Shown in pieces: positions 27,688-62,631 of a DNA stretch of 64,000 bases. The DNA is from Ramazzottius varieornatus (taxonomy: Eukaryota > Animalia > Tardigrada), in NCBI GenBank assembly GCA_001949185.1, contig BDGG01000001.1:5381530-5445529 (forward strand), in the 5' to 3' direction. A model generated the notes under the pieces. That model saw only the letters and a list, made by a program, of their open reading frames with translations, was not told the origin of the DNA and did no database searches. The number at the start of each line of letters is the position of its first letter. Position 1 is the stretch's first letter. The position numbers were made by a program, and so were the translations under genes.

Positions 27688-27727
27688 CTATGCCAACCAG
27701 CGCTCCACAACTTCTGTTAGGAGGTCA
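27688..27727 (+). promoter_or_regulatory. Conserved upstream module CTATGCCAAC...AGGTCA (first of eight; others at 31493, 35032, 38420, 47685, 49928, 53142, 57588)
   Basis: The same 10-mer lies 196-234 bp before the ATG of each full-length protease paralog, with AGGTC[A/G] 28-40 bp further on. Confidence 0.8.
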
Positions 27728-27895
27728 CCTCTGCGCTGAAACTCAAAATACATCTGAAAGATGAAATCTTGGAATATAATGTAGTGAGATTGAATAATTC
27801 GTTGTATTTTTGTCCTATTCGAGCTGTACTATTTGATCGCGGTCCGTTGTACTCCAGAAGCTTGATTGTGAGCTTAGTTCTTCGGGAAAAAGCAG

Positions 27896-30761
27896 ATGCG
27901 GGAAGTTGGTCGTTGTTTCGAAATTGTGTTTGAGAAATTGTTGTTGACAGTCGTCTTTTGGGGTTCCACGCATGAAGCGGTCCATGCAGCTTGTCCCACC
28001 GTCATTGAGCTTCAAAATGTGGGTGACTCGAAGTCCATTACATCGACGTTGAGCGCAAATGAAGTAAAAAGATGGATCGTGAAGGGCAATGGTCATCCCA
28101 TCAACATCACTATTAGTCGGATGTCAATGGGTCCCTGGAATAACGACGTAATGAAAAACATCTTTTTTGCATGTTTTGACTCTCCGCTTCTGAGAGTGGT
28201 CGACAACAAATGTAAGTGATGTTAATGTCACACCAATCCAAGTTTGTATTGATATCTATGCATCAATTGCCTATCGTGACATCTTGCAGACCCGCTTTTT
28301 CCTCTGGTGACCGTTTGTGCCGATAAATTGTTCAGCGGGCCATCCTTCGGCGACTTTTTGGGAAGTAGACGTTTTATTTCATGCGTCGGTGCGTTGTACT
28401 TTGTTTCATAAACCTGACTCATCACTCTTTCCTTCACAGAACATCAGCCACATCGGAAACTCTATGTACAATACCACTTTCACAATGTATTTGACCGGTG
28501 AGTTTGTGTGAGTGGAACAGCTGAATTAGATTCCGACGAACTGTCTACCCGAAGTTGGTGGTGCTACCGTGCGTTAGAACCGCCGAATGTTGCAGCGGTG
28601 CAGTGCGGCCAGGATCACTATGTGTGTCCCTCTGATCGTAAGAAGTGCATCCCTTTGGACCAGATGTGTGATGGTCAGCAAGATTGTCCACAAGGAGAGG
28701 ATGAGATATGCACGGAAAAGTGCGGAAATGCCGGAGCAGCGAACAAAAAGGACAAATTTAGCAGTAAAATTGTTGGTGGCGTGGAGGTAAGCATTCATTC
28801 GGAAACCCAATCTGCTAGTACTGCACCAGCAGTGTGGATTCGATTTCCAGGCAGTTCCATACAGCTGGCCATGGCAGGTTTTCGTCTACGGAACGGACGG
28901 CGCATATTCGTATCAATGTGGTGGGAGCATTGTGAGTGAATAGCCTAAACCAAAGTCCGGTAATGTTGAACTGCGACTAAACTGATTCGGACTATACGCC
29001 TCGTACTGAGAAAGGTTTTCTTTGTGAGTGACAGATTGGGCCACAGTGGATTCTGACTGCCGCGCAGTGTTGTTGGACAACAAATTTCGAAGCCAAGCAA
29101 GTGTGAGTGTTCTTTTGGTTTTCGTATAGGACATACTCATAAGCGCGGACGATTAAGGTCTTCGCGCGTTTTTGTAGGCTATGGGCACCTAACCAGATGA
29201 AGGTCTACGTCGGAGGTCACACGAAAACCGAAAACACTCCCGTGGCCGTAGCAGAGGTCATTCCTCATCCGGACTTCATTCCTTTAAAGGGCTACAATAC
29301 TGATATTCCCGCACCCTATCGCGACTACTGCATGGTGAAACTGGCAGAGGTATAACCGTAAGACATACGGAGACAGTGTCTTAGTCCAACTGCGCAAAAA
29401 CTGAAGCAACTGCTAATTCATGCTGCAGCCACTGGTGTACAGCGATAAGGTTGGACCAATTTGCTTGGCGCAACTACCCAACCCACCTCCAAAAACATCG
29501 TGCTACATAACAGGTTGGGGACGTACAGTGCCAACTGATATGGGTTCCTTCAGTCCGAAGCTGATGGAAGCAGACGTCAGGCTCAAAACGGACGAAGAAT
29601 GCTCCGCGGCTGCTCGCGAGGAGGGAGTTTCATGGAACAGTTACATGAGCCCGGAAGCCATGTGCACGCTGTCGAATCCCAAGTCAATGTACGTAGCCAC
29701 GTCAGTTGGTGCAGCTGGATGTATTTCCGGGCCGTTGAGTGTTTCCTAGTCTAATCATGACCTTGTTTCAGATGCGGCGGTGACAGCGGAGGACCTCTGG
29801 TTTGTCGACTTCCTAAAACTGACCGCTTTCAATGGCAGCTTATTGGAGTGACTTCCTATGGGTCGTAAGTGTTTAATTTGTTGTTTGATTGCCGGCAGGA
29901 GCAGACTTTAGGCACTCGCGATGTCACCTGGTTGGTTGTCTTGCTGGTTATAGGGTATGTGGAAAAGATCCGGCTTTCTCTGTCCGGGTACGCCGTGGAC
30001 TACCTTTCATCGCCGACGTGCTGTACAAGGAGAAGTACGACGGCTGGAACTCAAACAGAACTATCAGGCGTTTCGATCCATCGGTGCAGTACGACATCGC
30101 GGATTACAAGGTCGACATTCCAGTTGGCACACGCGAGCGAGAGTACACGGTAGATAAACCCAGGACAAATGCCTCTTGGTACGCCGAGGATAGTTGTTTC
30201 CCCAGTGTGGCGACCACTCCAGCCATCAAAGTTCCTACAACAACTACCACCCCCAGCACCACGACTCGCCTTACCACTAATCTCCCCACCACCACCACTA
30301 CTACCACCACTACCAGTACCAGTACCTCTACTCCTAAACCAACTACTCCTAAGCCAACTACCCCTGTCGCCACTACCCGTGCTCCTACCACCACCACCCC
30401 TCCAACTACCACCCCACTTACCACTACAACCACTACCTCCACCACTACTCCCACAACCACCACCACCACCACCACCACTACTCCTACAACTACTACCACA
30501 ACTCCAACAACTACCACTCCTACACCAACCACGACTACCACTTCTGCTACTACCACCACAGTTACCGATGCTGCCGCAACTGAAGTTTTCACTGAGGAGG
30601 TTACGCCTGAGGAGGGAGATACACCAGAGAAAATGACTATCCCGGCAGCCACTCAGACAACTAAGGGATCTAGCGCGACCAGCAATGGCCACTACATCCA
30701 CCTACTCACATTGCCTGTCTCCGCGGCTCTCTCATATACTTTCTCAAGACGAAAATGCTAA
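27896..30761 (+). CDS. CUB-LDLa-serine protease paralog 1; catalytic His replaced by Gln; long Thr mucin stalk; GPI-like tail
   Basis: Signal peptide, CUB-like exons, LDLa CGQDHYVC..CDGQQDCPQGEDEIC, K|IVGG, WPWQ, LTAAQCC, DYC, GDSGGP. Confidence 0.9.
30240..30560 (+). repeat. ACN (Thr) low-complexity repeat encoding the mucin-like stalk
   Basis: Runs of ACC/ACT/ACA codons in frame with the last exon of paralog 1. Confidence 0.9.
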
Positions 30762-31726
30762 GTGAGAATAGGCTCGGGTAATTTATTTCAGAGCTCTAGT
30801 TAACCCCGCGTGGAGATACGACATGTTACATGGGATTTTAGATGTGACGATGAACTTTCGTTGGAATGCGATTATGGGAATGAACAGATTAAACTGACGA
30901 ATTGAAAGCGAGCTGTTCCAGCGTTTAATGAGCTCAGACCACATCTATGATCGGTGTGTGTAGTACCGCTAACATGAGCACTGGGCGAAGCTTCTTGGTA
31001 AGGTGTGGCCAAATCGCGCAGTTTGGCGCTGAGAGGAAAAGTGTTTTTGTTGATTAATCAAGAATATAACAGTCATTTAACTCGAAGAAGACCTACTGAT
31101 TGGCTACAATGCAGCTACCTTTCCTCTTGGTACAGTTCATTTGACCACGCCTTACCAAAAAGCTTTGTGAAGCCGACATAAGTCAAGGAGATGGCCAGTC
31201 ACAACCTAATGGACCGATGACGAAAGACTCCGCACGGGGAGGAGGGATAACCGATCCAGCGTATTTTCCAATGCTTACGGATACGCGAAAGCGTGAAACA
31301 CGAAAACTTAATCGAGTCAGGGAGTTTTTTGCGTCCTCTAGGATGACTGTTCGTCCTGGCGAAACCGACACTACCGAATATTCTCAGCGATGTTGAATTA
31401 GCTTGACAGACCAAGCTTTCCGTGAAGGACAGCGACTCGAACAGCCGGCGGACATACCTTCCAGGCCACGTGCTCATGAACAGTCCGGAAATCTATGCCA
31501 ACAAGTGGAAGGTCGCTTGAAGGTCGTCCCTTCATCGACTGAAAATTAGTTTCGATAAAGTCAGCTCAGACACAAGAACAAGAAAAAGTGTAGTAACTGT
31601 GTATCTGGTAATAATCCTGTAATATCTTGCCATCTTTGAGCTGTAGTACTGTGACCTGCATCGCGGGAGCCACGAGGCCGTTTTTCTTCGTCTCTGAGCC
31701 TGGTTTGGCACCAACCGGAACGGCAG

Positions 31727-34646
31727 ATGTGGAGTGCTGGCGGTGGTTCAGAAACCTATTTTCGGAAAGTTGCGGCCAGTCTTGTCGTCTGGGCTTGTGC
31801 GCACATCATCGGTGTTCAAGCTTCGGATTGTCCCTCCTTAGTGGTGCTCGACAAACTTGGGGCTACAACAACCATCACAGCGTCACTGACGACCAACGAC
31901 ACAAAGAGATGGGTGGTAAAGAGCGACGGCCACCCAATCAAGATCTCCATCATTGCGCTAGACATGGGAAGTGTGCAATTTGATGCACCTAGCCAAACGC
32001 TCTCCGCGTGTCTGCCATCTCCCATCCTACGTGTTGTTGACAATAAGTGTGAGGATACCATGATCGTCGTACTCTGAAATCTATTTGACTGCTTCAACAC
32101 TAAATCCAGATAGAACGATCTGTCTGATTTGTAGACCCGCTGTTCCCACTAGTCACCACCTGTGGTAAATTTCCTCCGTTCGAGGTGACATCGTTCGGCG
32201 ATTTTTTGGTAAGTATGTCTCTCACCTTCCGTTGACCGCGCTACCATGTACAGTATGATCAACCACTCTGTACTGCTCGCAGAACATTACGCACACCGGG
32301 GATCAATACCTCGCCAGCACCTTCACCATGGATCTGACCGGTAGGTGTAGGCCGTAAGCTGCGGCCCACAGTGGCGGCTGCGTATACAAACTTCTGCCGT
32401 TGAATTTTCGCCTGCCTATGTTTAAATGATGGTGGAGGACAGGTCAAAGGCAGAAGTCCGTATACGCAGCCGCCACTGTCGGTCCGCAACTCAGTTTGGG
32501 ACAGCTGACTGTTACCGCCTTCCAACAAACAAATTTTGTAGTGGTCGAGTGCGGGCAGGACCACTTTAAATGCCCATCCGATCCGAGAAAGTGCATCCCA
32601 GTAGACAGGATGTGTGATGGCCAAAAAGACTGCCCAAACAACGAGGATGAGATATGCTCGGAACAATGCGGATATGCGGGTTCGGCGAACACGAAGGAGA
32701 TTTTTAAGAAGAAGATTGTTGGTGGTGTGGAGGTACGTCCAAAGACGCTCTAGAGCGCCTTGCGCAGGACTCCAGAGGGTGCAGTAGGTAAAAGATTTTT
32801 CTTTACAGGCCGCAAAACACAGCTGGCCATGGCAGGCTTACGTGGTCAACTACAATCTTCTCGCTGATAGATCATATACGTGTGGAGGAAGTGTTGTACG
32901 TATATCGACCAACTACACTGAAATTCGGGAGCGTTTATACCTATGTACTATCGAGAGTACCAGATTTCTGGGTTTCAGATCGGTTCGCAGTGGGTTTTAA
33001 CTGCCGCTCATTGCTGCTGGGGAAAAGATAACAACCATGTCGATGTGTAAGTACAGAGAATGCGGCGCCGTCGTTGGTACAAAATCTAGTGAAATGATGG
33101 AAATCCGTTGTCGAGCGTGAACTTAGTACCAACTTACCTCTTTCGCTTCACTGTCATGAGATTCAAATATGTCGTCACCGAAGCTGAATCCGCAGGCCTG
33201 CTGTCCCCGGTTATACTCCGCTGCGCCCGCAGCTATAATGCAGCTGCAGCCAGTCCGAACTATGGTTCTAACAATAAATGGTCCACGATGGCGCTCCATC
33301 CAGAGTTCTGTTACTCGTCTGTCTCATTCCGAATTTTTTTTATTGCAGACTTTGGAGACCCGATCAAATGACAGTTTATGCTGGAGGTCATACGAAAACC
33401 CAGAACGAACCTATAAAGGTTGAACAGATATTCCCGCACCCTAACTACACCGGTATCTATAACGAGGACTTGAAAGCAGTACGTGACGACTTCTGCATGA
33501 TAAAACTGGAAAAGGTAATCCTAAAAGAATACAGGGATGTATCGTTCAGCGTAGTAGAAGACCCAGATAACCGTTACATTTTGTCGTAGCCTCCGGTGCA
33601 TATGGAATCCATCCAGCCAATTTGCTTGCCGCAGCCGCCGGATCCGCCCGCAAAAACAGCATGTTACGCAACAGGTTGGGGACAAACGGTGCCTACTAAT
33701 CCAAAGAATGAGGAAAGGTCGAGCGAAAACTTGCTGGAAGTTGACCTTCGGATCAGATCTGACGACGAATGCTCAGCAGCTGCTTTCGAGTCGAATGACA
33801 CGAATCAGATGTTCATTAGCCCTGAGGCATTCTGCACTGTATCAAACCCGAAGTCAACGTACGTATGCTTGTTGTCCTGGGCGGCTAACTGTTCTCGCAT
33901 CCTGCAGCGTCGCTGTTGATACGCTGTGTCTTTTCAGGTGTTACGGTGACAGTGGAGGACCTCTGGCCTGCCGACTTCCTAAGCACAAGTTCTCCGAACA
34001 CTACCAATGGCAGCTTGTCGGAATAACTTCCTACGGATTGTGAGTGTCTATGTTTAGGTTGAAAGTAGCAATTAAATCCAAGAGATGTGACGTCACTAGG
34101 GCACTGTATCGTGTCGATAGGGCCTGCGGTCAAAATCCTGCGTTTTTCGCACGCATACGCCGTGGCTTACCGTTCATGGCTGATGTGTTGTGGAAAGAGC
34201 AGTACGCCGGTTGGTTCAAAAACAGAACGGTCCGCCGCTATGATCCCTCGGTGGATCGATACACACTCCAGGATTATGATATCAAAGTGACCGAGGGAGC
34301 GGTTGAGAGAGAGTACACCGGTGAGACGGCCAGAGCGAAAGCGCCATGGGACGTCCCTGACACCTGCGTTTTCAACTTCCCCAGTACGACATCGACAACG
34401 ACCACTACCACTACCACCAATGTCCAGCCTGCCGAGGCTACCAGCAAAAAAACTGCCAAACCCCGTAAAGTCACCGACCCTGCCAATCCGGAACCCGAGA
34501 ATGAAGAAGAACCTGAGGACGTAACTGTCGAGGTCACGGTAGCCGCTACCACCAAAAAGTCCGGCAGCAGTACCCACCTCGCTCACTTCGCTCCTGTGAT
34601 TCTCTGTGTTTCCTTCATAAGCTTGTTTACGACGTGCCACGGTTGA
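31727..34646 (+). CDS. CUB-LDLa-serine protease paralog 2
   Basis: Same exon set: KKIVGG, LTAAHCC, DDFC, CYGDSGGP, hydrophobic C-terminus. Confidence 0.9.
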
Positions 34647-35264
34647 CTGAAACATAGAAGCTCTTTTATTTTTCTTAAAAAGAATATAGCTTGGAACGTT
34701 TTTTATTATCCCATTTTACTCTTACTTTTTACAGTAGCTGTTCGTTAGCGTTCGTTCAGTTCCTTGATTCTGATGAGGATAGTATACAAATATAGTGGAA
34801 AGATTGATGTACTCCAACTGATCTTACGCACGGTTTTTTTTCGCGTCAGCTAATGAAGTCTGCAACAACAACAATAAACATCGGACGAGACTGCACACAT
34901 TGTTGAATCCGTTTATACCTTCTGGCAGGCTTGGTTTTGTTACTGATGCAAAATCTGGGAGCTGATTTTTGGAGCTTAATCTTCGGTCGTGCTTGGTCAT
35001 GCTTGTCGCAGAATGACATCAGCATCGAAACCTATGCCAACAGAGAGGATTAGTTTATAGTAGGCTCGAAGGTCACCTCTTTTCTCAAGTGGATCGTTCC
35101 AGAAAGCAAACTAACGAGCCCCGTGTTTATTTACTGCATTTTCGTCACATCTAACCGACGCTTCCTGTTATACTTTGCCCGATATTGCCCAACAGTATAT
35201 TCGTCAGTATATTTATCAGTATATTCATCAATATTTGTTGGAAACGTTATTTCGAATCAGGCTG

Positions 35265-38047
35265 ATGCGGAAAGCTCCTGATCGTTCCGCAACGCGCTTG
35301 CTTGGTTTCGTTGATCTCGTTGTGTGGACCTGTTTACATGCGCCTTTTGTCCATGCTGTGACAGATTGTCCAACCGTTATTGAGCTTCGGACGATCGGGG
35401 ACTCGAAAACCATCACATCGACTTTGTCGACGAACGAAATAAAAAGATGGGTCGTCAAAGCCAACGGACACCCAATCAACATGACCGTTACACAGTTGGA
35501 CATGGGATACATACTGCCGAACATTCCCAAGCTTCCCGGCCCTGGGTGTGAGAACTCGCCGCTCCTAAGAGTTGCTGACAAAAAGTGTACGAAATTTGTG
35601 GCTCATATTTGAAATTCGTTTCGCAAAGATTAGTAGTTGCTGTAAACGCGTATAGGAAAAGTCTGGAACAGTATGAAGTTTGGAACAGGCGCTTCCAACA
35701 GCGGACCGAAAGTTCGTACGTAAGTGTGCAATTCACGCCAATGCACTTTTGACAATTTCCTGCGGTTGATTTCTCAATTTGCCGTCTTTTCCGCCTGTTC
35801 CACACTTTTTATTGTTCCAAATCTTTCCTTTCGAGCGTGTACAGAGAAGCCATCGAATGACTGTATCCACAGATCCGCTGTATCCGCTGGTGACCGCCTG
35901 CGGCCCCTTGTTTATGAGGCCACTCCCACTGCGATCGTTTGCAGATTTCCTGGTAAGTTAATGTTATTCCTCATGTTATCGCGTTATTCTCTTGTAGCAC
36001 TGACACCTGGCTGCTCACCCGCTTTATTTTGGTGACAGAACATTACTCATATCGGTAATTCAACGTTCCCTAGTTCTTTCACGATGGAACTTGTCGGTAT
36101 GTAACTTGGTCGAAATCACAACGTTGAACTATTAATCATTTTCGATTAGAAATTACTGCAGTGGTCGTCCAAACACACTACAGTCAGCTTGTGAGGGCGT
36201 AAAAAGTAGTAGAAATTGTAGCTGTCGAGTGTGGCCAGGACGATTTTGTGTGCCCTTCCGACGCGAGCAAGTGCATTCAGGCGGATAAGATGTGCGATGG
36301 TTACCAAGATTGCCCAAAGGGGGAAGACGAAATCTGCACCGAGGATTGCGGTAATGCCGGTGCGGCGAACAAGAAAGGAAAATTAAGTGGAAAAATTGTT
36401 GGTGGCGCAGAGGTATGCTCTTGTGATGGGAAGCGCAGCTTGAAAGTATTCATGGAACTACTTTCAAACTGGATTTTTCTCTAATTCTAATTGGATTTTT
36501 TTAGGCAGTCCCGTTTAGTTGGCCATGGCAGGTTTTCATACTCTCGGATAACGGTGGCTCGCATTTTGGTACATGCGGAGGAAGCATTGTATGTGAAGCT
36601 TAACCTCCCCCAAGGTATCAGCAATAAAATTTTTTATTTCCTGGTTGTACATAGGTGGCACCCCAGTGGATCTTGACTGCCGCTCACTGTTGCTGGAACA
36701 TCGATCGGTATGGCAGCGATCTGGGGTGTATTAAGTCGCTGATGATTGCGGTTATTTGAATGAGATATTCACTTTCGCTGTGCGGGATTTATTGCAGGCT
36801 GCGGCAACCTCAACAGTTGAGGGTTTACGCAGGTGTTCACCTGAAAGACGGAGAACCACATGTGACCGTAGTGAAGGTGGTTGCTCATCCCGAGTTTGGT
36901 TATTACTACAACTCTGACTTCCATGCACTCCACCATGACGCATGCATGCTTAAACTGGCACAGGTCAGTGCTTACTACAGAATTCCGACAATTCCCTCTG
37001 ATGGTGCAGTCGGTACAGAAAACGCTTGCTTTCTACACTACAGCCACCGAGCTACACGGACAGAATCCAGCCGATTTGCTTGGCGCAGAAGCCAGCACCG
37101 CCGCCAGGAACTTCATGCTTTATTACAGGTTGGGGGCGTGAGGTCCCGGAGACGATCGAGTCGGAGTCACGGAATCTGATGGAAGCCGACGTCAAACTCT
37201 GGAGCGATGAGGAATGCTCGGCCGGTGAACATCTTGATGGAGCATCACCGTTTTTAATGAGCCCTGAAGCACTTTGCACATCATCATCCCCCAAAACAGC
37301 GTAAGTGAGATGGTTCGCGGGTTTTCCGGAACGGTCGTCGAGTCTTTGTAGTCGAAACATTCGCTGCTGGATTCAAAACTTTCGGCTATACTAATTTAGC
37401 AACATTCGCAGATGTCAGGGTGACAGTGGAGGACCACTGCTTTGTCGGCTTCCCCGAACCGAACACTTCCAGTGGCAACTAGTTGGGGTTACTTCTTACG
37501 GCAATATGACGTAAGTGTCACTACTGTGCGCAACCAGAATCAGAGAGCCCTACGAGATTGGTTCGCTTGCAGGAGATGTGGTGACAGCCCATCATATTTC
37601 GCAACAGTACGCCGTGCCCTGACTTTCATGGCCGACGTGTTGTATAACGAGAATTATGATGGCTGGAATCCCAACAGATCGATCAGGAGGTTCGACCCGT
37701 CGGTGCAGTATGGAACCGAAGATTACGCTATCGACGTTCCGGCCCAAGCAGATACACTTCCTCCCAAGCTTAATCCAGTCAGGACAAACGCTTCCTGGGT
37801 CGCCGACGACAGTTGTTTTCCCGCACCGCCACCCACGACAGTTACCAGCACTGCGGGACCTGGAGATGGTGTGACGCTTGAGGGCATTACTACTTCTGTC
37901 CTGGGACCAGGTGGACCACCGAACATTGCCAGTAATGTCCCTTGCACCAGTCTTACCTTGGTTTATTCTGTCTTGTTGATTTGCGCTTTTGCAAAAGGTA
38001 GTGCCCAGATACCGCTCCCTCTCCGTATGGTCTTTTCTACGACTTAA
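35265..38047 (+). CDS. CUB-LDLa-serine protease paralog 3
   Basis: [26 protein letters not shown], hydrophobic C-terminus. Confidence 0.9.
35645..35839. mobile_element. MITE family A variant in intron 1 of paralog 3
   Basis: TA-flanked, with inverted arms and a core homologous to 51545-51724 and 53684-53887 in the opposite orientation. Confidence 0.7.
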
Positions 38048-38632
38048 AAAAATGTAATTCAAAGTTTAGTGATGAACAGGCTGCGAGGTCACCAGGTTTT
38101 GACATTTTCCTCTATCTAGTCGCCGGCCTCCTCAGGCATTACGACTGATCGCCATTATAATCGCCGGGGAAGTATGAGCGTCGGAAGAGCTTTTCAGAGG
38201 TGGAGCCATTTTGATTCTTGAGAGATCGAACGCTCTGATGTTCGAGCGTCAAGTGAACCGGCAATTTGCATGCAAAACGCAGTACCTCACATGCTAATTT
38301 TGAGCAATGCGTGAGCGATTTTGAGCAATTCGAGCGGAGAACTTTTGAGCGTTTCCTCAGCTTCGGACTCAGGGACCCGGAGGACGGGCTACCGAATTCA
38401 TAAGTAATGAAATGGAAACCTATGCCAACAGAGGGCACCAGCCACCAAGGCTTGAAGGTCACTGCATTATCAAACCAGACAATTGGAGTGCAGAAACAAA
38501 GAAACTTGTATCTCGTAAATAAACTTTGTAGTATTCTGTCGATACCTGCTGTAGTATATTGCCTATAAAACCGGAAAAGCTACTGTCGCCCTACCTGCAT
38601 ACCTCGTTGAGAAATTTCTCTGAATCGGTTGA

Positions 38633-41777: not shown

Positions 41778-41779
41778 TG

Positions 41780-44754: not shown

Positions 44755-44759
44755 ATAAT

Positions 44760-52952: not shown

Positions 52953-53337
52953 ACACGCTCTGGTTAAGTTAGACCTGTTGTTTCGCGCACGCGGCCTTGT
53001 AACAGTCACTGGGAGTCTCTTTCCGAAGTTTGATGGGAGATTATGTCTTTGAATTTTGTGCCCTGCTCAGTTTCAATCTCGAAGTCCTGATGAAACTTCG
53101 AAGTTGTACTTCATGCAGGACACGGGTACAGTAAAATCTAGCTATGCCAACGGAAGAAGATTTTTGTTGTAGTCCACGAGAAGGTCACCTCGTACATTAT
53201 AGAAAATCTGAAGTAAATGTGGCACAAGAGAGTGCTGGATCAATTCCACCAACTTTGATTTTGTAGTATTTGGCCGTATTCACAGCAGTTAGCACTGTAA
53301 CTCGTAGGAACGTCATGTGCATCGTTGCGGTATTAAT

Positions 53338-55942
53338 ATGGTAACTGACCTGAGTCGATGGAAGCCAAATCCCCCACCGTGGGTGCTGCCAGTAGTCTGT
53401 CAGATCATGTTCTACCTACTACCTGTCCAAGCAGATTCAGATTGTTTCACAACGATTCGACTGAAGAAACTTGGAGATTCGGAAATCATTACTTCGGCCT
53501 TATCTATCAACAGAGTCAGAAGATGGAATGTGCATGGGAACGGGCATCCCATCCGGATAAAGGTACTGAGGCTCGACATGGGCGTGTCTCACTCATTGAA
53601 CGGTTTTGGGGAGTTGTGTGATCAGAAATATGGCGCACCTCGGGCTGAAAATCTCCGACAACAAATGCAAGTGCATAACTGTACACGTAAGCGCACGCAA
53701 AGAATGTTCGGGCCAGTAAAAAGCTTTGGTCAGACGGAGAAGGCGGAAAATTGAAATTCAACCGTAGAAGATTGTTAAAACGTGCAGTGGAGTGAATTAC
53801 ACACGAACGTACGTTTTTCCGTTCCGCTGCTTCGGAATCGCCCGGCCCCAACTTTTTGCTGGCCCGAACTTTCTTTTTGTGCGTGTGCCGCAAAACTTTC
53901 AACGGCGCAGCATTTTGAATTACGTAGATTGACTTTGCAGATCCGAAGTTCCCACTGTTGGTGGCATGTGGCAAGTCTACGTCAGGCGTCATATCCTACG
54001 GCGACCTTCTGGTAAGCGCCCAGTCGTTACGTGGTGTTTGGTTGTTCGTTCGATAGTCGTTCATTTGATATGCCGGTGTGTACTTTGTCCGGAAGAACAT
54101 CACCCATATCGGAAGCGCCGAAGCAAGTTCTTTCGAATTGCAAGTGATCTGTAAGTACTACACGGCTCAGTAGTATTGGTACCACACGGCTAAGTTAAGG
54201 GTAAGACCACTTAGCATAAAGTACGAGCTGCATGATGTACAGCGGTGGAATGTGGCCAGGAGGATTACTATTGTGCTTCCAACCATTCAATCTGCATACC
54301 ACAGACGAAGATGTGTGATGACAGAAGAGACTGTCCAAAAGACGAGGACGAGATATGCACAGAAGACTGCGGCATTGCTGGTCCTCTTCACAACAAGAAA
54401 ACGTTTGACGGAAAGATCACAGGACGGACAGAGGTAATATCCACGGTTCAACAGAACAAAAACCTACTGCGGCTACTCTTAGGAGTAAATTGGATACTAC
54501 GTACTTTTGGTTGCAGTCCGCCGTGCACAGTTGGCCTTGGCAGATTTTCATGAGAAGGATCTTTACATCTCGAAATCTAAACCTGGAAAGTACATGCGGC
54601 GGAAGTGTTGTAAGCCATCAAGTTCTCGATCGACCTCACTTAGAATAAAACTAGAAAGGACATGTTGGCTATATATAGAACCTGCAGGTGGCGCCACAGT
54701 GGATTTTGATTGCCGCACACTGTTGTTTTACTGACAACGACGATGGTGGCGAGAGGTAAGAGCATGGTGGTGGATCCAAAAACGGCACGAAAGTCGCAGT
54801 TCGCAGACCGAACTTTTTATTGACTGACGGTATTTGGTTTCAGCGTGGCTACTCCAGAAAGCGTCACGGTCGGGGTTGGGATGCACAATCGGAGGAAGGG
54901 TTACGCCATCGTATCCGATGTTGTTAGAGAAATAGACAAAGTTTTTGTTCACCCAGCCTACCGATCGGTGTACAACAGCGAATTCGTGGGACCCGATAAA
55001 GACTTCTGCCTCCTGAAACTAAAAGAGGTTTTCACTTGACTACTACCAACAGTTATCGCTCAGTTTCCATTATAACTTCCTTTCCAGCCACTGGAGTACA
55101 ACAAGAAAATCAGTCCAGTCTGCTTAGCGCAGATGCCAGAACCGCCAATAGGCACATCATGTTACACGACGGGTTGGGGAGACATAGGAGAAAAGACCTC
55201 TGGAAATGACACAAGGGATTACAGCAATACCGTGCTGATGGAGGCTGACGTCAAGATACGCTCAACCGATCACTGTACCAGCGCGATGGTCAACCGTGGA
55301 ACACCGGCATACTTAAGCCCCGAGTCGATCTGCATATTGCAGGATGACAAAGGAACGTAAGTACCACAGCCTGCAACAAACTTGGCTCACTTCTGTACAG
55401 TACTGCGACAAAACTATTGTATCCTGTAAACAGGTGTGGTGGTGACAGTGGAGGACCGTTGGTTTGTCGCCTTCCCAACTCGACTCATATGAAGTGGCAG
55501 TTGGTTATTGGGATGACATCCTACGGAAGGTGTGCATTAGCGTTCGCTCATTTTGAAGAGTGTCTTTTGAAAACTTGAGAAACCTTGTTTATTCGGTAGG
55601 TACTGTGCCGTCACGCCATCAGTCTATTCGCGTACCCGACGGGGTTTAGGTTTCATTGCGGACACGTTGTACGCGGAAAACTACGACGGCTGGTTTACGG
55701 ATAGAAACGTCCGACCTTACGACACTTCGCGCACTTACGGTCCAAAAGACTTCAAAATTGACGTTCCGGCTGGTCCACCAGATCCACCAGAACCGGTGGC
55801 TGTGGATACCAATGGCTGGATAACAGGAGACCAATGTACCTCGATGGACTACACCCAGTCATCGCCGGTTTCCATTTCGACAAATCAGCTGCTCGGTTTA
55901 GTACTTACAATATCTCGGTTACTGCATGCAGTCTATTTATAA
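53338..55942 (+). pseudogene. Protease paralog 7 with a +1 frameshift in exon 1 and an altered activation site (possible pseudogene or sequence error)
   Basis: CCTCGGGCTGAAAATCTCCGACAACAAA reads PRLKISDNK, like the paralogs, only if one G is removed. K|ITGR replaces K|IVGG. IAAHCC and GDSGGP are intact. Confidence 0.7.
53684..53887. mobile_element. MITE family A variant in intron 1 of paralog 7
   Basis: Inverted arms ttcgggccagtaaaaag / tttttgctggcccgaa; core shared with 51545-51724. Confidence 0.7.
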
Positions 55943-57803
55943 TTTTTTTACACTCTAAATGACCGAAAGGGGATGTGAATTCATTACGCTGTAAGTAGCT
56001 TGTTTACTAACTGCAACAATAGGAAGTTGATTGTCTGTACGGATGTGACGTGTGATGTTACTGATGCAACTGCCTTTATTGGCTCCGACACGCAAAGCTT
56101 CCGATAAGTTTGTTGAGGACATTTCATCAACGACGTCAGATTGGGCAATGGCCGAAAGTCCCGAAAAGCTTTCGAAAGCAAATCATACATTATAAAAATG
56201 TAAGTTTCTCATCTTCTTCAACCGTCAGTCAGGTTTGGTCCTACCCACACTGTTTGTCTCAGTTCTTCTCTTTTCGTACTACACTGTAGTAGTCGAGAGA
56301 AAACCATGAAGGTTGGCCGTTTCAAGTCGATAGGTGGCGCACTGTACCATCAATTCCGGAATTTCGGGTAATCGAGAAGGTGGTGATTGGTCCTATTTGG
56401 CGACGCCCTGGTTTTGACCAGTTAGAAAAAGGTGAAAGTGAGTTTCCTTCCTGGTATTCTGAAAGCTCGAAATCGCGTGATGCTCAAGGCGTCAACTTGT
56501 GAGAAGAATCAGCCTGATAGTACGGTTAACGCGGAGGCCAGTAGAGCACCATGCCGCCCACCCGAATCATGTAGACGAGTTTCGGGATATCATTAGCTAC
56601 GTGGAGTCAGCTACGGAGGACTCGTTTCGCGAAGCTCAACTCTTCACTTGAAGGTTTCACTCAACACAGTCAAGGTTCCACGTCCACTCCGAGCACAAAG
56701 CCCACTCTACGATATCCTACAGGCGGGATGAGATTCTTCGCCAAACGCATGGCTGGGGTTACAATGAAAAACAGTGTTCGTGTGTACCTCGAAAAGTACG
56801 TATAATTAACTTGTTGAGCATTACGGGATGATCGCTATAAGTTGGACGGATTCTAGAAATTCGTGGCAAAATCGCTTCCACCTTTTAACTTTCAAACTTC
56901 AGCTCATTCAATAGATAACGTCTCCATCTTCTATTCTTGTGACGGTCCGCGATCCCTTCAAAAAGAAGATCGTGTGATTTTTTTAGCGCATTGACTCGGT
57001 GCACGGTCTGTCACGGTTTTTTCTACGTGCACGGGCTGGTACACTGCCTTTGACTCCAGGCACCACCTTTGACCACTGCCTTCCGCATACTCACGAAACA
57101 TCCGTGCGAAAAAGCCAAATACAGAGGTGTTTGAGATTGGAACACTAGAGCAAATTAAGTTCGTTGCACCGAAATGGTGGCCTTTGCCAGCCCTAGACGG
57201 ACCAACGCAACGGAAGACGCGTGGCACCAAGATCTAGCTTTTTGATAGTTTCATATGACACCATAATCGAACAACGTCTTAACAGTAACTGAACCAACAA
57301 ACGCCGTTCCGAAACCCTTCAACTCTTCAGGTCTTCTCCAGGTTGTGCAAGTACACCCCGTTCACGCCACATCGCTACCATCTGGCATTTCGACGTGGAT
57401 TGAAAAAGGAACAGACAGCTCTAACACGCTGAGGAACGGAGAAACCAAAAAATAGTTCAAAAAATACTCGAAACATTTTGCTTACCCCCTGAAACAGCTG
57501 TAATATTATGGCTCACTGACCCACCTATGTGCATAATCAAAGATGCAGGAAACCCAGAAATGCATGCTTTGTGTAAACTAGTCGATTCTATGTCAACAAG
57601 TTTAGATCAGACTTCCTGTAGAGGTCATCTGTGCGGACATCTTAACACTGTACTCCAAATAAGGTATCTGGTTTGCTTGATAGTTCGTCGCACAGCTAAT
57701 CACGGTTGAACAGTATCCTGTAATACATCCTAGAAATACTGCTAAGCTTTTATTGGAGTACTTCTGTATGTTCGTTTTATTTATTGGCGTTTCTTCGTCC
57801 TGA

Positions 57804-60800
57804 ATGCATGGCCTCGCAAGTGGAGCAAATCATTTTGGACGCCTGTTTGTGGTAATGCTAAGGCTTCTCGGGACTTACTGGCTGCCCACTGGTGTAGTTC
57901 GCGCCAGGGATAATCCAGAATGCCCCACGGCAATTCACCTCTGGCAACTGGATGGATCCAGACCTATCGAATCATCATTACCGGGGGAAGCGACTCGACG
58001 ATGGAACGTTATCGGACACGGACGCCCTATTCGTGTCAACATCACCAAATTCCAGATGGGGGCAACTGTCCAAAGGGGTATTTTCAAAAAGTATTGTCCG
58101 GTTACCCCGCGACTGAAGATCGTGGATAACAGATGCAAGTAAACCGAGTGGTTCGCAGTCGCCTTTCATAAGCAGTGTCCTGGTAGGTGAAAATCATCTT
58201 GGCTTACAAGGTTTGGCATTTTGTACAGATCCGAAATTTCCACTCGTCGTTGCATGTGGCACTGACTCGTTCAGTTTCACCTCTTACAGTGACCACTTGG
58301 TAAGATCAGTAAGACATGTTACCTGTCAACACTTCTAATCAATGTACAGTGTACGAAAAAATTAACCGTTAAAAATGGGCGTAATACTGCAGCTGGAGAC
58401 TATTGACGACTCGGCCAATGAGAATTATATTTTACTGCATGCGCAAATCTCATTGGTTTTATCCATCTGGTTCCATCCATAACCCATTTTTAACGGTTTA
58501 TTTTGTCGTACACTGTAGTGCACAATAGCTGCGAAACTTGTCCGTTGAAAATCCACCTCAAAGTTTATCGATTGTTCAACAGAATATTAGTCATCTTGGA
58601 GGCTCCAGAGGACCCAGCTCTTTCACCTTGGAAGTAACCTGTAAGTGACTGAAAAAGGGAGCAGCCACATTTGCAAGACTGTCTAGGGTATAAATAATTA
58701 AAACCCGTCAGTAACTGTATGCATTGCAGCGGTAGAATGTGGACAGGACCATTTTGTGTGTCCCTCGGACAGAACCAAATGCATAACCATGGAGAAGATG
58801 TGTGATGGTCGACGAGACTGTCCAGATGGAGAAGACGAGATATGTACGGAAGAATGCGGAGAATCGAGCTCGGCGATTTCGAAGAATCCTTATCGGCGAA
58901 AAATAGTGGGCGGCGAAGAGGTGCGAACGACCTACTGGTACTATGGGTGTGGGGCGATGCTTAATTCTGAGTATAGATACAATCTTGTACAGTGTACTGA
59001 ATTTAATTAGGCCTCCCCTCACAGCTGGCCGTGGCAAGTTTTCATCAGGGCGGACAACGGTACGCAACCCGTGACTTGCGGAGGGAGTATCGTAAGGCGA
59101 TAGCTCAATCAATGGAACACCGTTTGACACGGTGTAACGCAAAATATTTTAAGTTTTGTCCTTGTGGAGCGCTTCAGATCGCGCCACGGTGGGTTCTGAC
59201 CGCGGCTCATTGCTGCACAGGCAAGCATTATGGCGTAGACAGGCAATACGATGCGGAGAAGGTGCAAGTTGGAGTTGGAATGCACGAAAAGACCAAAGGG
59301 CAACCTGTCTCTAGCGCGTACTTGAGAGAGGTGGTAAAAGTCATTGTGTCGCCTGGCTATGCAGGAGATGCTTACAACAGCGAATTTCCATTGCCTCAGC
59401 ATGACTTCTGTCTGCTGAAACTAAAACAGGTACGAGGTAAAGGACATGGAGTTTTCCAGTGGAAACTTCGGACATGGAAATTTCCAAACTGCGGTGTAGG
59501 GTGGCACCACAATATGTGACTGTTTTGTCACGTGACGTCTTGCAGACTGGAATGTGCAAGGAAGGAAGGAATTTTATTAGCCTCGACAATTCAGTCGACG
59601 ACTTCCCCGATGTTAAGAGGATCAAAGTCTACTCAGCACGATGATGGAAAAAGTTACAGTAACTAAAACAGAGTCACCCGGTTGATCAGGAACGAGTATC
59701 GTTATGAAGATCGATCATTCAGGTTCAAGACAACAAATAGATCCGTTTGGAATGCCAGCTAGAGAGACTAAAGGAGAATTTATAACACACATCGAGAAAA
59801 TTTGGTTAGCCGTTCGGTTCACAGTTATAGACCGATCTTCCAAGGAATGATGCTGATGTTGGGCGACCAGTTCTCGGCTTCCAGGACAAGGTCCACATCG
59901 CTAGCAAAGACTCCGATGCGACCGACCGACTTAGTGTCGTCAGGGCCAACAGGAACTATCCAGACGAAGCGAGGCTTCACTCCGATGCCTTGCCGGTAAT
60001 CTTTCAGTTGTTCAGCGGTTACGTGTCTCGGGGCACCCCGAATGGCGAAGTCACGACCCGGCGGCCCCTTGGCTCGCAGCGGGTTGGCAGTTATACTTTC
60101 TTCATCGGCCTTCTTCGTACCTCTTACAACAACGCGGGTTGCCTTTCGCCGGACAGCGGGGTTCTCGGATGGTTGAGATCTCCGCGCAGCAACGGCAGCA
60201 AAGGTTGCAGTGGTGATAGCCTTGACTGGGGAAACTACGGGCGTTGCGGTGGCGGTAGCCTGGGTCATACTGGGGACACTAGCCTTGGTGGCAGGAGGCT
60301 CATATGGCGGGACAGGCAGCCGTTGGGGAATATTTTCCAGCAAGGGCAATCTTCCCAAGATGGAATCCTGGCTTACCTGTAGAGCTTTGACGGTCTTCTG
60401 AAGCTCCAGCTTGTCTTTCTGTAGGGATTCCACGAGGCTCTCCAGGCGGCTGATCTGCTCAGCTTGGTACCGAAGGTGTTCCATGGGCTGGTACATTTGG
60501 ATCGGCCATATCCGCTTGAATTCCTCTCGACAATGATGCCCCAATACTTCGGCCATCCCTTCCATGGGCGTGTTGTATCTTTTCAGGAGCTCATCCTCGG
60601 CCCCGACGCAAGATAGCTCTATATCAGATTTGCTACCAGCTGCTCTTCCGAAGGAGCAGATGGTTTCGCCATAGCAGATAAATAACTGTTGATTGATAAG
60701 AAAAGAACGGAGTTAAATAAATGCTACTATTTGTTACAGTGATGATTTGTTACAATGATGCAACCGCAGACTGGAAAGTGCAACCGCTTTTGTGAAGTTT

Positions 60801-62631
60801 GGCCTTGCTTCACGGAATCGACATGCTTTACATGCGTCGAAAACGCGTCAGAGGCTTTGTAGAGCATCCATCAATCACTTATGTTATCGTAGGAGTTGAC
60901 CAGAACGGAGGTGTGACGTCTTGGCGTACGTTTCCGTAAGAAACTACACAAGCGCCTCTTCAAGGCTACGTTGTTTTTCTCGTCCAGACTCTTTAACATT
61001 GGATTTTATCCTGTCTCCTGCAGACCTTCCTTTCTCACCTTTGCACCGTCAAATGACTCGGAAGACGGCTTGGCTATGATCAGAAAGACTCTCTCTATTG
61101 ACTGACTTACCGTACGACGCAATCTGACCAGCAGCTACGTTAAAACAACCTGGAAATTTTCATGTCCAAAATTCTCACTGGAAAACTCTATGTCCTTTAC
61201 CTCGTAGGAAAGAGAACAATGTACTGTATCACCCTGATATTTCTGCGAGACATGTTACCCATGGCGCCATCTGCGGAACTCTCGAGACATACGGCGGACA
61301 GGGCGTATGTATGGACGACATATGTCCGGTTGGTGGGGCCACGGGTAACAGGGTTCGCTGAGCTGTCGGGGGAATGCAAGACTGCTTGAAATTTCAGTAC
61401 CAGTAAAAACAAACTACTTCGCTCAGTGGACGATTGCCGTGTGAGTGTGACCTCTTTTTCAGACTTTCCGGGGCGGTCTGTTGCGGATGCGGATGAGCGC
61501 CAGCGAAATATACTGTGCCAAACTGCAAGTAAACAGTCACGCTCCGCTGGCGGACTTCCACTTCCGCTGTGGGCGGCTCCGAAAGTCTGACCGGTGGGGT
61601 TTCTACGGCTCCCAGTAATTTTTTCCACCGAGCGAAGAAATGTAGCGAAAATACCTGCGTTTGACGATTTGTGTTGCAGCCCTTGGTGTACAGTCAGACA
61701 GTCGCGCCCATCTGTCTCCCTCAGCTACCAGAGCCGCCGGTGGGAACGAGTTGCTACTCAACCGGGTGGGGCCTCCTGCAAGATCCAACTGGTCCAACCG
61801 ACTTTACTGATACCACCAGTGAAGTGCTGCAGGAAGTGGACGAAAAGATTCAGTCGACCAATGTATGCACCAATCCCAGATATGCAGCTCACTTGGGTTT
61901 CAACTTGGACGTTATGAGCCCTGATACCATTTGTACTTTACAGCACCTGAAAGGAACGTAAGTCAGGGCTTTGCTTTTTTTTCCAGCTGCTGGTCAGGAA
62001 AGTGTAAAAGAGCTGCGCCTTTAGGTGCAAAGGAGACAGCGGAGGACCCTTAGCCTGCCGGTTACCCAAAACCGAGCATTTTCAGTGGCAGCTGGTTGGG
62101 GCGACGTCTTACGGACTGTAAGCTTAGTTCGGTGCCGCATTCAGTATTGCTTGTTCACCTTTCGAGGATTTTTTCAGAGCGTGCGGAGGTACTCCTTCCT
62201 TTTACGCGCGAGTACGGCGAGGTTTACCGTTTATCGCCAGCACACTCTACCAAGAAAAATATGACGGATGGCTCCTGAACAGAACGGTCAGGGTTTTCAG
62301 TCGAGGTGCTAAGTACGACCCCAGTGATTTTAACGTCAGTGTTCCATCTCGGAATCCGTGGGTGGATATCAGATACGAGGAAGAGCCAGATAATCGTCCC
62401 AATGGATGGATTGAAGAAAGTCTGTGCAAGCCCGCCTCATCAACATCGACACCCGGTCTCAGTTCGTACGTTGCTTTTAGCATGAACCCGCCAGCAGACG
62501 ACGGTGAACGGTCCCCAAGACCAGAAGCTAGTGCGGCCTCTGTTAGCGGCATGCGGAAGTTGTTTTCCCTTGCCCTATTTGTATTGCTGTTAATACGAAA
62601 CGGGGGGGGCGGTGGTTTCAATAATTTTTAA
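57804..62631 (+). CDS. CUB-LDLa-serine protease paralog 8
   Basis: RRKIVGG, LTAAHCC, HDFC, CKGDSGGP, tail RKLFSLALFVLLLI. A 2.2-kb intron starts at 59430. Confidence 0.88.
58347..58515. mobile_element. Tc1/mariner-type MITE
   Basis: TA|cagtgtacgaaaaaattaaccgttaaaaatggg ... cccatttttaacggtttattttgtcgtacactg|TA. Confidence 0.85.
59433..61204. mobile_element. Mariner-like TIR element (54-bp TIRs, TA target duplication) carrying a LINE ORF1-like gene
   Basis: TA|cgaggtaaaggacatggagttttccagt...aaatttcca and tggaaatttt...actggaaaactctatgtcctttacctcg|TA. Confidence 0.8.
59825..60565 (-). CDS. 246-aa non-LTR retrotransposon ORF1 (gag-like) protein
   Basis: Coiled coil (ISRLESLVESLQKDKLELQKTVKAL), TFAAVAAR, and an RRM-like C-terminus ending ENWSPNISIIPW; intronless. 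Confidence 0.6.
   Translation of the reverse strand: MEGMAEVLGHHCREEFKRIWPIQMYQPMEHLRYQAEQISRLESLVESLQKDKLELQKTVKALQVSQDSILGRLPLLENIPQRLPVPPYEPPATKASVPSMTQATATATPVVSPVKAITTATFAAVAARRSQPSENPAVRRKATRVVVRGTKKADEESITANPLRAKGPPGRDFAIRGAPRHVTAEQLKDYRQGIGVKPRFVWIVPVGPDDTKSVGRIGVFASDVDLVLEAENWSPNISIIPWKIGL

Follow-up and report, generated by a model that had tools for sequence, protein, structure and literature searches.

Several kinds of S1 serine protease resemble parts of the genes described here. Prostasin (PRSS8) and testisin (PRSS21), both GPI-anchored in mammals, combine a signal peptide and a chymotrypsin-fold zymogen with a near-terminal hydrophobic C-terminal signal; they are trypsin-like enzymes, with Asp189, and lack CUB and LDLa domains, an extension of about 60 amino acids, and a long mucin-like stalk. 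The type II enzymes enteropeptidase, matriptase, and TMPRSS6 have CUB, LDLa, and protease domains in that order; a signal anchor at the N-terminus holds them in the membrane, SEA or several CUB/LDLa modules are present, and the activation bond lies between stem and catalytic domain, with a linker cysteine for a disulfide tether. The membrane-tethered mosaic S1 proteases of the Drosophila apical matrix, Stubble, Notopleural, and Lint, are also type II. Finally, a common secreted type in tardigrades is the CUB-(LDLa)-trypsin protein that carries a signal peptide and terminates at the end of its protease domain; Ramazzottius varieornatus, Hypsibius, and Paramacrobiotus have several each. Databases call such proteins "CUB/LDLa/Trypsin domain-containing protein", "plasminogen-like", or "venom serine protease 34".

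The 64,000-nucleotide stretch of the R. varieornatus genome analyzed here (the window) contains eight paralogs, all on the plus strand, at positions 27688-62631: c1 (27896-30761), c2 (31727-34646), c3 (35265-38047), c4 (38633-41777), c5 (~47726-49375), c6 (50125-52952), c7 (53338-55942), and c8 (57804-62631). They were delimited by self-comparison of plus-strand ORF pieces and by spliced alignment, and the spliced gene models were built from homology and canonical splice sites only. The paralogs match one another with E values of 1e-15 to 1e-74, so the similarity is not due to chance. The common layout has ten exons, encoding a signal peptide, a divergent CUB domain, one LDLa, an S1 protease domain activated at K|IVGG, an extension of about 60 amino acids, a variable S/T/P stalk, and a short hydrophobic C-terminal tail. 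The initial annotation had described eight same-strand paralogs with a common exon layout, which the alignments bear out (c8 has nine exons and c5 is without exons 1-3), and had called the members active, dead, truncated, and frameshifted. Splice models and a check of the catalytic triad agree: clean open models with a full triad were obtained for five of the eight (c2, c3, c4, c6, and c8), and the other three are damaged, c1 appearing catalytically dead, c5 truncated, and c7 frameshifted.

We lean, by a slight balance of probability, toward reading the array as a tardigrade-specific subfamily of mosaic S1 protease zymogens that has expanded in tandem, in a scheme that would include GPI tails, activation by a trypsin-like enzyme, and joint switching on. 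With the type II proteases the array shares the order of its domains, the position of the activation bond, and, in intact copies, a linker cysteine positioned for pairing with Cys122. Unlike them, it has a single CUB and a single LDLa behind a short signal-like sequence at the N-terminus, and its sole long hydrophobic element is C-terminal. The signal-like h-regions are short and include polar or charged residues in c3, c4, and c6. The best PDB matches of an AlphaFold2 model of a Paramacrobiotus relative, P0016, are multidomain chains: enteropeptidase, aligned over 567 columns with E 2e-27, and TMPRSS6, over 522 columns with E 2e-24. Prostasin structures are among the best matches of the catalytic domain. 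NCBI has named a Paramacrobiotus relative "prostasin-like".

Support for the CUB domain is indirect. Pfam made no CUB call in the window's own N-terminal domain, a PDB profile search with that domain found no match, and its direct alignment with CUB by hhalign is weak (P 0.004). In P0016, Pfam CUB matches with E 0.017 over positions 7-109 of 110, all ten Atlas structure neighbors of residues 20-165 are CUB proteins (TM 0.68-0.77), and the AlphaFold2 model folds the N-domain entirely as beta structure, at a block pLDDT that for residues 41-170 is mostly 83-93 but falls to 59 and 65 in places. The R. varieornatus N-domains align with those of Paramacrobiotus (hhalign 93.8%, P 1.7e-7), and these in turn with bona fide CUB domains (89%, P 2.4e-6). 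Through its relatives, then, the N-terminal domain of the array may be taken as a divergent CUB, unlike the CUB of the secreted proteins, which is canonical enough for Pfam. The LDLa (Pfam Ldl_recept_a) was found in exon 4 of all seven copies that keep that exon (E 2e-8 to 5e-5). The cutoff is 24.1 bits; six copies clear it with 28.1-34.9 bits, and c7, at 23.9 bits, falls slightly below it.

Pfam Trypsin matched the exons of c1 that encode the protease. Six copies have K|IVGG as their activation motif and c7 has K|ITGR, and KIVGG is still present in the c5 remnant. At position 189, array members have Ser, Thr, Ala, or Gly in place of the Asp189 of prostasin, testisin, and most of the secreted proteins. 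Since Asp189 is absent, array members probably need a trypsin-like activator. According to the model, the zymogen would be cleaved after Lys by a separate protease of that kind, for which the dispersed paralogs that retain Asp189 are candidates. The CUB-LDLa part would remain disulfide-tethered to the active domain and provide partner recognition, while the active enzyme, with its non-basic S1 pocket, would cleave extracellular substrates at the cell surface. Stubble, Notopleural, and Lint, from an animal that also moults, offer a plausible functional analogy for an enzyme that works from the surface on cuticle or apical matrix, although their stems are unlike those of the array.

What distinguishes the array lies beyond the protease domain. 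The secreted proteins resemble the array up to that point, with a signal peptide followed by a single CUB, in most cases a single LDLa-like module, and a single protease domain, but they end 48-55 residues past GDSGG (in one case 72), without extension, stalk, or tail. A search of 1.84 billion proteins with the C-terminal extension gave 16 matches, mostly R. varieornatus fragments, with three short ENA contigs, one Paramacrobiotus protein, and one weak unrelated match. Outside the array, three R. varieornatus paralogs dispersed in the genome share this build, as do at least two genes of Paramacrobiotus. As judged by these searches, the module of extension, stalk, and tail is restricted to a small tardigrade subfamily and is not peculiar to the array, whereas the secreted CUB-LDLa-protease core is common in tardigrades and apparently occurs in arthropods too: the nearest protein-atlas clusters, no more than a lead, consist of arthropod CUB+LDLa+Trypsin proteins 397-472 amino acids long (scores 0.94 and 0.91). 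The earlier claim of a lineage-specific hybrid architecture holds for the C-terminal module but not for its framing as a hybrid of type II and prostasin designs. Such a fusion is a vertebrate-centered idea, unsupported in view of the common secreted tardigrade core. What is unusual in the architecture is confined to the C-terminal module, and it is this module that is new.

The extension is kept in all eight copies and carries N-glycosylation sequons. It matches no Pfam family and has pLDDT below 50 in the model of P0016, and so may be a linker rather than a domain. From its final Cys, 34-187 residues remain (tail included), rich in S/T with some Pro; the longest stretch, in c1, has 101 S/T among its 187 residues. 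Each tail closes with 9-24 uncharged, hydrophobic residues and a further 2-17 before the stop. A hydrophobic end directly before the stop is present in all eight array copies, two of the three dispersed paralogs, and two Paramacrobiotus genes, and like tails occur in a RefSeq Paramacrobiotus model and an environmental fragment. By eye, strictly hydrophobic cores span about 12-15 residues, interrupted in c4 and c7 by a charged residue; in c2 the core is 14 residues and the protein ends 5 residues on, while in c6 the hydrophobic tail stops no more than 4 residues short of the stop codon. In most copies, small-residue triplets lie 4-13 residues upstream. The hydrophobic segment is too short for a normal membrane helix. 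The array tails fit GPI anchoring, a property of prostasin and testisin and a putative one of the tardigrade proteins, and one resemblance is to the tail of a testisin-like sequence. The protein would enter the secretory pathway, the C-terminal segment would give way to a GPI anchor, attached a few residues upstream at a site of small residues, and the glycosylated stalk would keep the enzyme above the apical epithelial membrane.

Upstream of the genes lies a bipartite motif with seven matches in the 55.8-Mb genome, all seven before array members (control, 1 match): c1, 27688-27727; c2, 31493-31526; c3, 35032-35075; c4, 38420-38461; c6, 49928-49968; c7, 53142-53187; and c8, 57588-57627, all on the plus strand. 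Position 27688, where the array starts, is the first base of the c1 motif. That one promoter module serves the array, as first proposed, is consistent with this genome-wide uniqueness. Because the copies share this conserved 5' control module, they are probably switched on together. Values of dN/dS lie between 0.09 and 0.30 for the N-domain, protease, and extension and between 0.22 and 0.62 for the tail region, with dS from 0.4 to saturated, pointing to old copies kept by purifying selection.

Perhaps the C-terminal segment is not a GPI signal but crosses the membrane once as a type I anchor, leaving a minimal stub in the cytoplasm, as tryptase gamma does. Serine proteases anchored by C-terminal transmembrane domains are a known class (PMC10252689). 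The core is followed by 11-17 residues starting with K or R in c3 (17), in c8 (11), and in the dispersed paralog at C1:6.85 Mb (c7 has 9 residues after its core), and the uncharged stretches of c2, c3, c5, and c6 run to 20-24 residues once polar residues are included. However, c2, c5, c6, and the Paramacrobiotus relative end 2-5 residues past the hydrophobic stretch, and these near-terminal ends, the short cores, and the small-residue triplets together fit GPI signals better than transmembrane helices; we regard a type I anchor as unlikely. It is less likely still that the products are soluble secreted enzymes (of digestion or moulting fluid, for example), with the hydrophobic end spliced out or irrelevant. 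The closest larger family is indeed a secreted one with nothing beyond the protease domain, the nearest atlas clusters are too short for the C-terminal module, and the deposited GenBank models of c1, c5, c6, and c8 splice out of the last exon ahead of the hydrophobic tail. Those models, however, are visibly faulty. Public annotation holds the array genes only as fragments; the GenBank models skip the GDSGGP exon, whose 93-nt counterpart is kept in the RefSeq Paramacrobiotus gene, and they merge neighbors (RvY_01908 joins c3 and c4, and RvY_01913 runs from c5 into the region upstream of c6). The recurrence of the hydrophobic end across array, paralogs, and Paramacrobiotus, and a tail dN/dS below 1, also speak against a soluble enzyme.

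One might also view the array as mainly an evolutionary relic of decaying duplicates, with little or no expression and no joint function. Three of the eight copies are disabled (c1 by a lost donor and His57Gln, c5 by deletion, c7 by frameshift), a retroelement and repeats have inserted within and between the genes, and public annotation failed to yield clean models. Yet five copies remain fully open, with canonical splice sites and complete triads despite dS of 0.4 to saturation, dN/dS is 0.1-0.3, and the short upstream motifs persist although the surrounding flanks are unalignable. We consider a relic very improbable.

The reference layout is that of c2 (31493-34646, plus strand; exons 31727-32048, 32135-32208, 32283-32340, 32542-32732, 32809-32895, 32979-33046, 33349-33514, 33590-33858, 33938-34039, 34121-34646), which encodes 620 amino acids through GT-AG introns, with no internal stops, a complete H/D/S triad, and Ser at 189. 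Also intact, with complete triads, are c3 (35032-38047, plus; exons 35265-35586, 35873-35952, 36039-36096, 36222-36412, 36505-36588, 36655-36725, 36798-36963, 37044-37300, 37412-37510, 37576-38047; 599 amino acids, all introns GT-AG, Thr at 189), c4 (38420-41777, plus; exons 38633-38945, 39028-39110, 39195-39252, 39428-39618, 39691-39765, 39830-39894, 39955-40120, 40188-40450, 41178-41276, 41342-41777; 582 amino acids, TAGHC and GDSGGS, Thr at 189, intron 8 of 727 nt), and c6 (49928-52952, plus; exons 50125-50443, 50521-50597, 50668-50725, 50808-50998, 51074-51154, 51226-51293, 51763-51928, 52016-52278, 52347-52445, 52523-52952; 583 amino acids, all introns GT-AG, Ala at 189).

The three damaged copies appear from their sequences to be decaying or non-catalytic. 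The upstream module and ten exons of c1 occupy 27688-30761 (plus; exons 27896-28211, 28290-28360, 28440-28497, 28596-28786, 28851-28931, 29035-29102, 29178-29349, 29429-29688, 29772-29864, 29954-30761). Its 705-amino-acid model is open only with a non-canonical GG donor for exon 2 (28361-28362; GT in six paralogs), since use of the next GT, 4 nt further on, brings a stop codon into frame. With its catalytic His57 changed to Gln (TAAQC), c1 is probably dead or a pseudogene. The 5'-truncated c5 (47685-49375, plus; remaining exons 47726-47752, 47825-47905, 47980-48038, 48135-48300, 48374-48630, 48792-48887, 48946-49375) keeps the protease domain, extension, stalk, and tail; with exons 1-3 and most of exon 4 gone, it has no signal peptide, CUB, or LDLa. 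Upstream motif 1 is at 47685-47694, and homology with c4 resumes at 47730, the last ~23 nt of exon 4, which implies an internal deletion of about 1 kb. The remaining exons are open, the triad is intact, and an ATG within motif 1 is in frame with the remnant. In c7 (53142-55942, plus; exons 53338-53666, 53941-54011, 54096-54150, 54243-54433, 54517-54609, 54688-54755, 54844-55027, 55088-55356, 55434-55529, 55600-55942), exon 1 has, near 53630-53640, a net 1 nt more than c2 and c6 and 10 nt more than c8, so the CUB frame is broken.

Between c4 and c5 lies a degenerate non-LTR retroelement (44754-47308, plus), its frames broken over several ORF pieces, with Pfam Exo_endo_phos_2 and Exo_endo_phos on 44754-45731 and RVT_1 on 46157-46729. 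The last copy, c8 (57588-62631, plus; exons 57804-58134, 58229-58299, 58583-58640, 58730-58920, 59011-59091, 59178-59429, 61680-61957, 62025-62117, 62178-62631), is intact, with 602 amino acids, a complete triad, and Gly at 189. Its exon 1 donor is GC, as in c7, and its exon 59178-59429 corresponds to exons 6 and 7 of the other copies, the intron between them having been lost. The 2.25-kb intron that follows (59430-61679) is a repeat-element insertion on the minus strand. A Pfam search with its minus-strand ORF (59828-60712, 295 amino acids) gave no match; the ORF has 44 matches in the genome, with identity up to 88%.

Comparing all plus-strand open reading frame (ORF) pieces against one another reveals the same series of coding blocks eight times over between 27.9 and 62.6 kb, confirming the tandem array (copies c1 to c8, 27688-62631) reported in the initial annotation. 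The window corresponds to G000:C1:5381530-5445529 in an assembly of 55.8 Mb and 200 contigs; its DNA contains introns and comes from an animal, the tardigrade Ramazzottius varieornatus, not from human. Exons were modeled by protein-to-genome spliced alignment, with the template being at first P0016 (a full-length Paramacrobiotus relative known from a RefSeq model) and then the hand-verified model of c2. Database and structure searches used single exons or proteins retrieved from the databases. Spliced in this way, c2 gives a clean product of 620 aa from ten exons, every intron being GT-AG, and the same ten exons are found in c3 (599 aa), c4 (582 aa), and c6 (583 aa). In c8 (602 aa), the intron between exons 6 and 7 has been lost and the following intron carries a 2.25-kb repeat insertion. 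That long intron holds an ORF of 295 aa (59828-60712, minus strand) belonging to no Pfam family; it is part of a repeat, an uncharacterised mobile element, with 44 matches in the genome at identities up to 88%. Intron positions and phases are kept among the copies (for example, a Tyr codon is split at the exon 1/2 junction in all of them). Exon 1 is closed by a GC rather than a GT donor in c7 (53666) and c8 (58134), within a strong GCAAGT context, and this is probably a functional GC-AG intron, seemingly inherited, and not a lesion.

The initial annotation held that the array includes active, dead, truncated, and frameshifted members, and each kind can be pointed to. Five copies (c2, c3, c4, c6, and c8) have intact models and a full catalytic triad. 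His57, Asp102, and Ser195 are all present in c2 through c8; since Gln replaces His57 in c1, that copy is classed, as judged from its residues, as a protease homologue rather than an enzyme. The exon 2 donor of c1 is moreover GG, as against GT in six paralogs, and use of the closest alternative GT leads to a frameshift into a stop. What remains of c5 starts, by homology, with the last 23 nt of exon 4, immediately 3' of the first block of the upstream module, from which it follows that a deletion of about 1 kb took out the signal, CUB, and LDLa regions; the remainder is open. A 17-nt direct duplication lies at the deletion junction (47685-47752). The upstream block of c5 contains an ATG in frame with the surviving KIVGG remnant, so the truncated gene could encode a protease lacking a signal peptide. 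Exon 1 of c7 has a net gain of 1 nt, which shifts its frame, and c7 also departs from the others at the activation motif. There it reads K/ITGR (the slash marking the putative cleavage site), and K/IVGG is read in c1, c2, c3, c4, c6, and c8, as well as in the c5 remnant; cutting at this bond would give the Ile16-Val-Gly-Gly N-terminus of an activated S1A protease.

Pfam Trypsin (PF00089) matches the translations of three c1 exons, which have paralogous exons in all eight copies, and every canonical protease motif was found in the models. P0016 matches the same family with an E-value of 4e-51, and its AlphaFold2 model, compared with protease structures, gives target-normalised TM scores of 0.82 to 0.89. 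An LDLa domain, taken as some 40 residues with six Cys and an acidic cluster at the C-terminal side, was matched by Pfam (PF00057) in all seven translations of exon 4, over profile positions 2-37 of 37 and with E-values from 2e-8 to 5e-5. Of the seven, c7 alone stays below the curated cutoff, by 0.2 bit.

The N-terminal domain is probably a divergent CUB, as had been proposed, but the argument passes through a relative. Pfam finds no CUB match (PF00431) in exon 1 of the window copies, and a profile of seven exon 1 translations meets only chance matches among PDB sequences (E about 1). Aligned directly by hhalign with a set of ten CUB domains delimited by Pfam, the window N-domain reaches only P 0.004, though the register is correct. 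The steps on either side of Paramacrobiotus are firmer: nine R. varieornatus N-domains align with three from Paramacrobiotus at 93.8% (P 1.7e-7), and the Paramacrobiotus N-domains align with true CUB domains at 89% (P 2.4e-6). In P0016, Pfam CUB spans almost the entire profile, though under the cutoff (E 0.017), and for residues 20-165 the Atlas gives ten structure neighbours, every one of them a CUB protein. The CUB fold is a beta-sandwich of about 110 residues. When P0016 is modeled with AlphaFold2 (mean pLDDT 75.5), its N-domain comes out all-beta, and the block from residues 41 to 170 has pLDDT values mostly of 83 to 93, with dips to 59 and 65. Compared with the PDB, the model agrees best with enteropeptidase and TMPRSS6, each aligned across more than 520 columns, a span that takes in CUB, LDLa, and protease as a whole. 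These structural results refer to P0016 and not to the window copies, whose own N-domain is spread over three exons and to which the results would extend by way of the hhalign chain. When the first 193 residues of the Paramacrobiotus relative served as query in a word-based search, the sole match was the query itself, and the results of a search with the whole of P0016 were dominated by multi-protease "polyserases".

Beyond the protease domain lies a stretch of about 60 aa common to all eight copies and without a Pfam family. Its core reads Y-x-G-W-x-x-N-R-T followed by D-P-S-V-x-Y, and a Cys stands at its end. A profile of this extension found 16 matches among 1.84 billion proteins, mostly R. 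varieornatus fragments; the others include three short ENA contigs, one full-length Paramacrobiotus protein, and a repetitive, unrelated protein of 1115 aa that is matched weakly (E 3.8e-4). In the AlphaFold model of P0016 the region has pLDDT below 50, so the extension, instead of folding, may form a glycosylated neck. From its final Cys to the C-terminus there are 34 to 187 residues, rich in Ser and Thr with some Pro (101 of the 187 are Ser or Thr in c1). The proteins end in an uncharged hydrophobic stretch, then 2 to 17 residues, then the stop. Judged by eye, the cores that are hydrophobic throughout span some 12 to 15 residues, a length that is short for a membrane helix and typical of GPI signals. 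Small-residue triplets occur 4 to 13 residues upstream in most copies, and by a heuristic of our own, most copies and relatives carry the pattern of a GPI-type C-terminal signal (small omega region, short spacer, and hydrophobic end without a real cytoplasmic tail); c3 has no omega candidate by this heuristic, and the ends are longer in c3 and c8. The same ending is found in the RefSeq model of P0016, in a further relative sequence (P0137), in two dispersed paralogs, and in one environmental fragment. At the other end of the proteins, inspection by eye shows, for a putative ER signal peptide, h-regions of about 9 to 13 residues and a site of the V-x-A type directly before the first CUB Cys.

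The claim that the copies stand under one promoter module has real support. The block CTATGYCAAC is kept in all eight copies, at -196 to -234 from the ATG, in 5' flanks that otherwise cannot be aligned. In seven of the eight it is followed, 1 to 29 nt later, by RAGGTCR; c5 has the first block alone. The combined pattern matches the genome seven times, always on the plus strand and each time ahead of an array copy (a control pattern matched once), and the pair is absent from the three dispersed paralogs L003, L004, and L005. Closer to the ATG is a third block, CTGTAnTA. We take RAGGTCR to resemble an extended nuclear-receptor half-site (AGGTCA) and treat it as a candidate for one. The second and third blocks could equally be the ends of an intron in the 5' UTR, with AAG/GTCA as its donor and CTGTAG as its acceptor. 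Another reading, that the first block (which has an ATG) is a small coding first exon, was rejected: phase is not kept, c3 and c6 have in-frame stops, and the length is variable, with a block spacing of 1 to 29 nt (first match) and about 28 to 40 nt from ATG to GT. Poly(A)-signal hexamers were found 3' of the stops in three copies only and are uninformative.

In the maximum-likelihood tree, c3 and c4, then c5, c6, and c1, form a supported clade, which c2 and the contig 11 paralog adjoin; c7 and c8 lie outside. Synonymous divergence is 0.4 to 0.8 for c3 and c4 and saturated for other pairs. The ratio dN/dS is 0.09 to 0.30 in the N-domain, protease, and extension and 0.22 to 0.62 in the stalk and tail. 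The array copies are old duplicates under purifying selection. At the specificity position of the protease, residue 189, all array members and the contig 11 paralog carry Ser, Thr, Ala, or Gly; Asp stands there in P0016 and in two paralogs, one at C2:3.23 Mb and one at C1:6.85 Mb. Lys or Arg precedes every activation bond. Lacking Asp189, the array members would, we infer, be incapable of activating themselves and would rely on a trypsin-like enzyme, that is, on a cascade.

The build of the array genes recurs in Paramacrobiotus and in three dispersed paralogs of R. varieornatus, and it is therefore older than this array. L003 (G000:C11:1799000-1808999) groups with the array, but the ORF of its last exon has no hydrophobic tail at its end; L004 (G000:C2:3222000-3231999) and L005 (G000:C1:6844000-6853999) keep Asp189 and have the tail. 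The 10 kb around each of the two Paramacrobiotus genes contain no further member of the family.

Among membrane-anchored serine proteases, the N-anchored class has a modular stem and the GPI-anchored class has none. Such proteases are held either by a helix, at the N- or the C-terminus, or by GPI, and in humans two are GPI-anchored (PMC10252689). [quoted passage not shown] TTSPs begin with a cytoplasmic segment, followed by a signal anchor of some 20 residues that stays uncleaved, but in the array the mature CUB starts 31 to 40 residues from the Met, after a hydrophobic stretch of no more than about 9 to 13 residues, and the long hydrophobic element is C-terminal. The initial annotation set type II proteases against stemless GPI-anchored ones and saw a lineage-specific hybrid of the two. 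That contrast omits a third group, the secreted CUB-(LDLa)-trypsin proteins. Many signal-peptide proteins of this kind in tardigrades end where the protease domain ends, whereas the array adds a C-terminal module, and the atlas clusters nearest to P0016 are arthropod CUB, LDLa, and Trypsin proteins of 397 to 472 aa (a lead only). The earlier interpretation is thus upheld in part: the core is shared with secreted proteins, and what appears tardigrade-specific is the C-terminal module. The array is best read as a secreted panarthropod core with a tardigrade-specific C-terminal tether. Literature searches found no paper on this protease family. Set beside the three known designs (N-terminal anchor with a stem, C-terminal helix, and stemless GPI anchor), a CUB-LDLa protease carrying a GPI-type tail would be a fourth combination, and it would show that recognition modules and tethering mode can recombine independently. 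The domain combination is unusual, and the locus is a neat experimental handle. Five of its genes are intact, dead and truncated variants occur naturally, and the control module measures 40 nt; for tardigrade biology this is a compact, testable set that could serve studies of surface proteolysis in moulting, feeding, or hatching.

A more elaborate scheme can be drawn, though we think it improbable in its entirety. Tardigrades would have fitted the panarthropod secreted CUB-LDLa protease with a tether of their own making (glycosylated neck, mucin stalk, and GPI signal); in Ramazzottius the result would be a co-regulated battery of non-tryptic surface zymogens fired by the Asp189 paralogs, a membrane-bound cascade; and the AGGTCA-type half-site upstream, as for the nuclear receptors that time the moult, would link the battery to remodelling of cuticle or eggshell.

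The window matches GenBank entries GAU89347 to GAU89362 (R. varieornatus RvY_01904 to RvY_01919), whose array models are fragmented and chimeric and call for re-annotation. Four skip the short exon (93 nt) encoding GDSGGP, which is retained in the RefSeq Paramacrobiotus gene; RvY_01908 is a fusion of c3 (last exon) with c4 (LDLa exon); and RvY_01913 begins in c5 and reaches into the motif-bearing region upstream of c6. Owing to such models, the family is invisible to searches by domain architecture. The 5.9 kb separating c4 from c5 are in large part taken up by a degenerate non-LTR retroelement (44754-47308, plus strand) with endonuclease and reverse-transcriptase pieces. A short repeat is shared by a site far upstream (3425-3615), the c4-c5 spacer (43946-44068), and the enlarged intron 6 of c6 (51319-51558). 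Upstream of the array, a single-exon ORF (16601-17683, plus strand) encodes a rhodopsin-family GPCR (Pfam 7tm_1, E 4e-39). Synteny with Paramacrobiotus was considered on the basis of neighbouring GPCRs, but at 22 to 23% identity these permit no conclusion. Other neighbours outside the array are a gene with EGF-like and Cys-rich pieces (753-4600, minus strand), an importin-beta/HEAT-repeat gene (23700-25650, plus strand), and an ORF piece (22347-22523, minus strand) with a D-x-S-D-E motif of the LDLa type.
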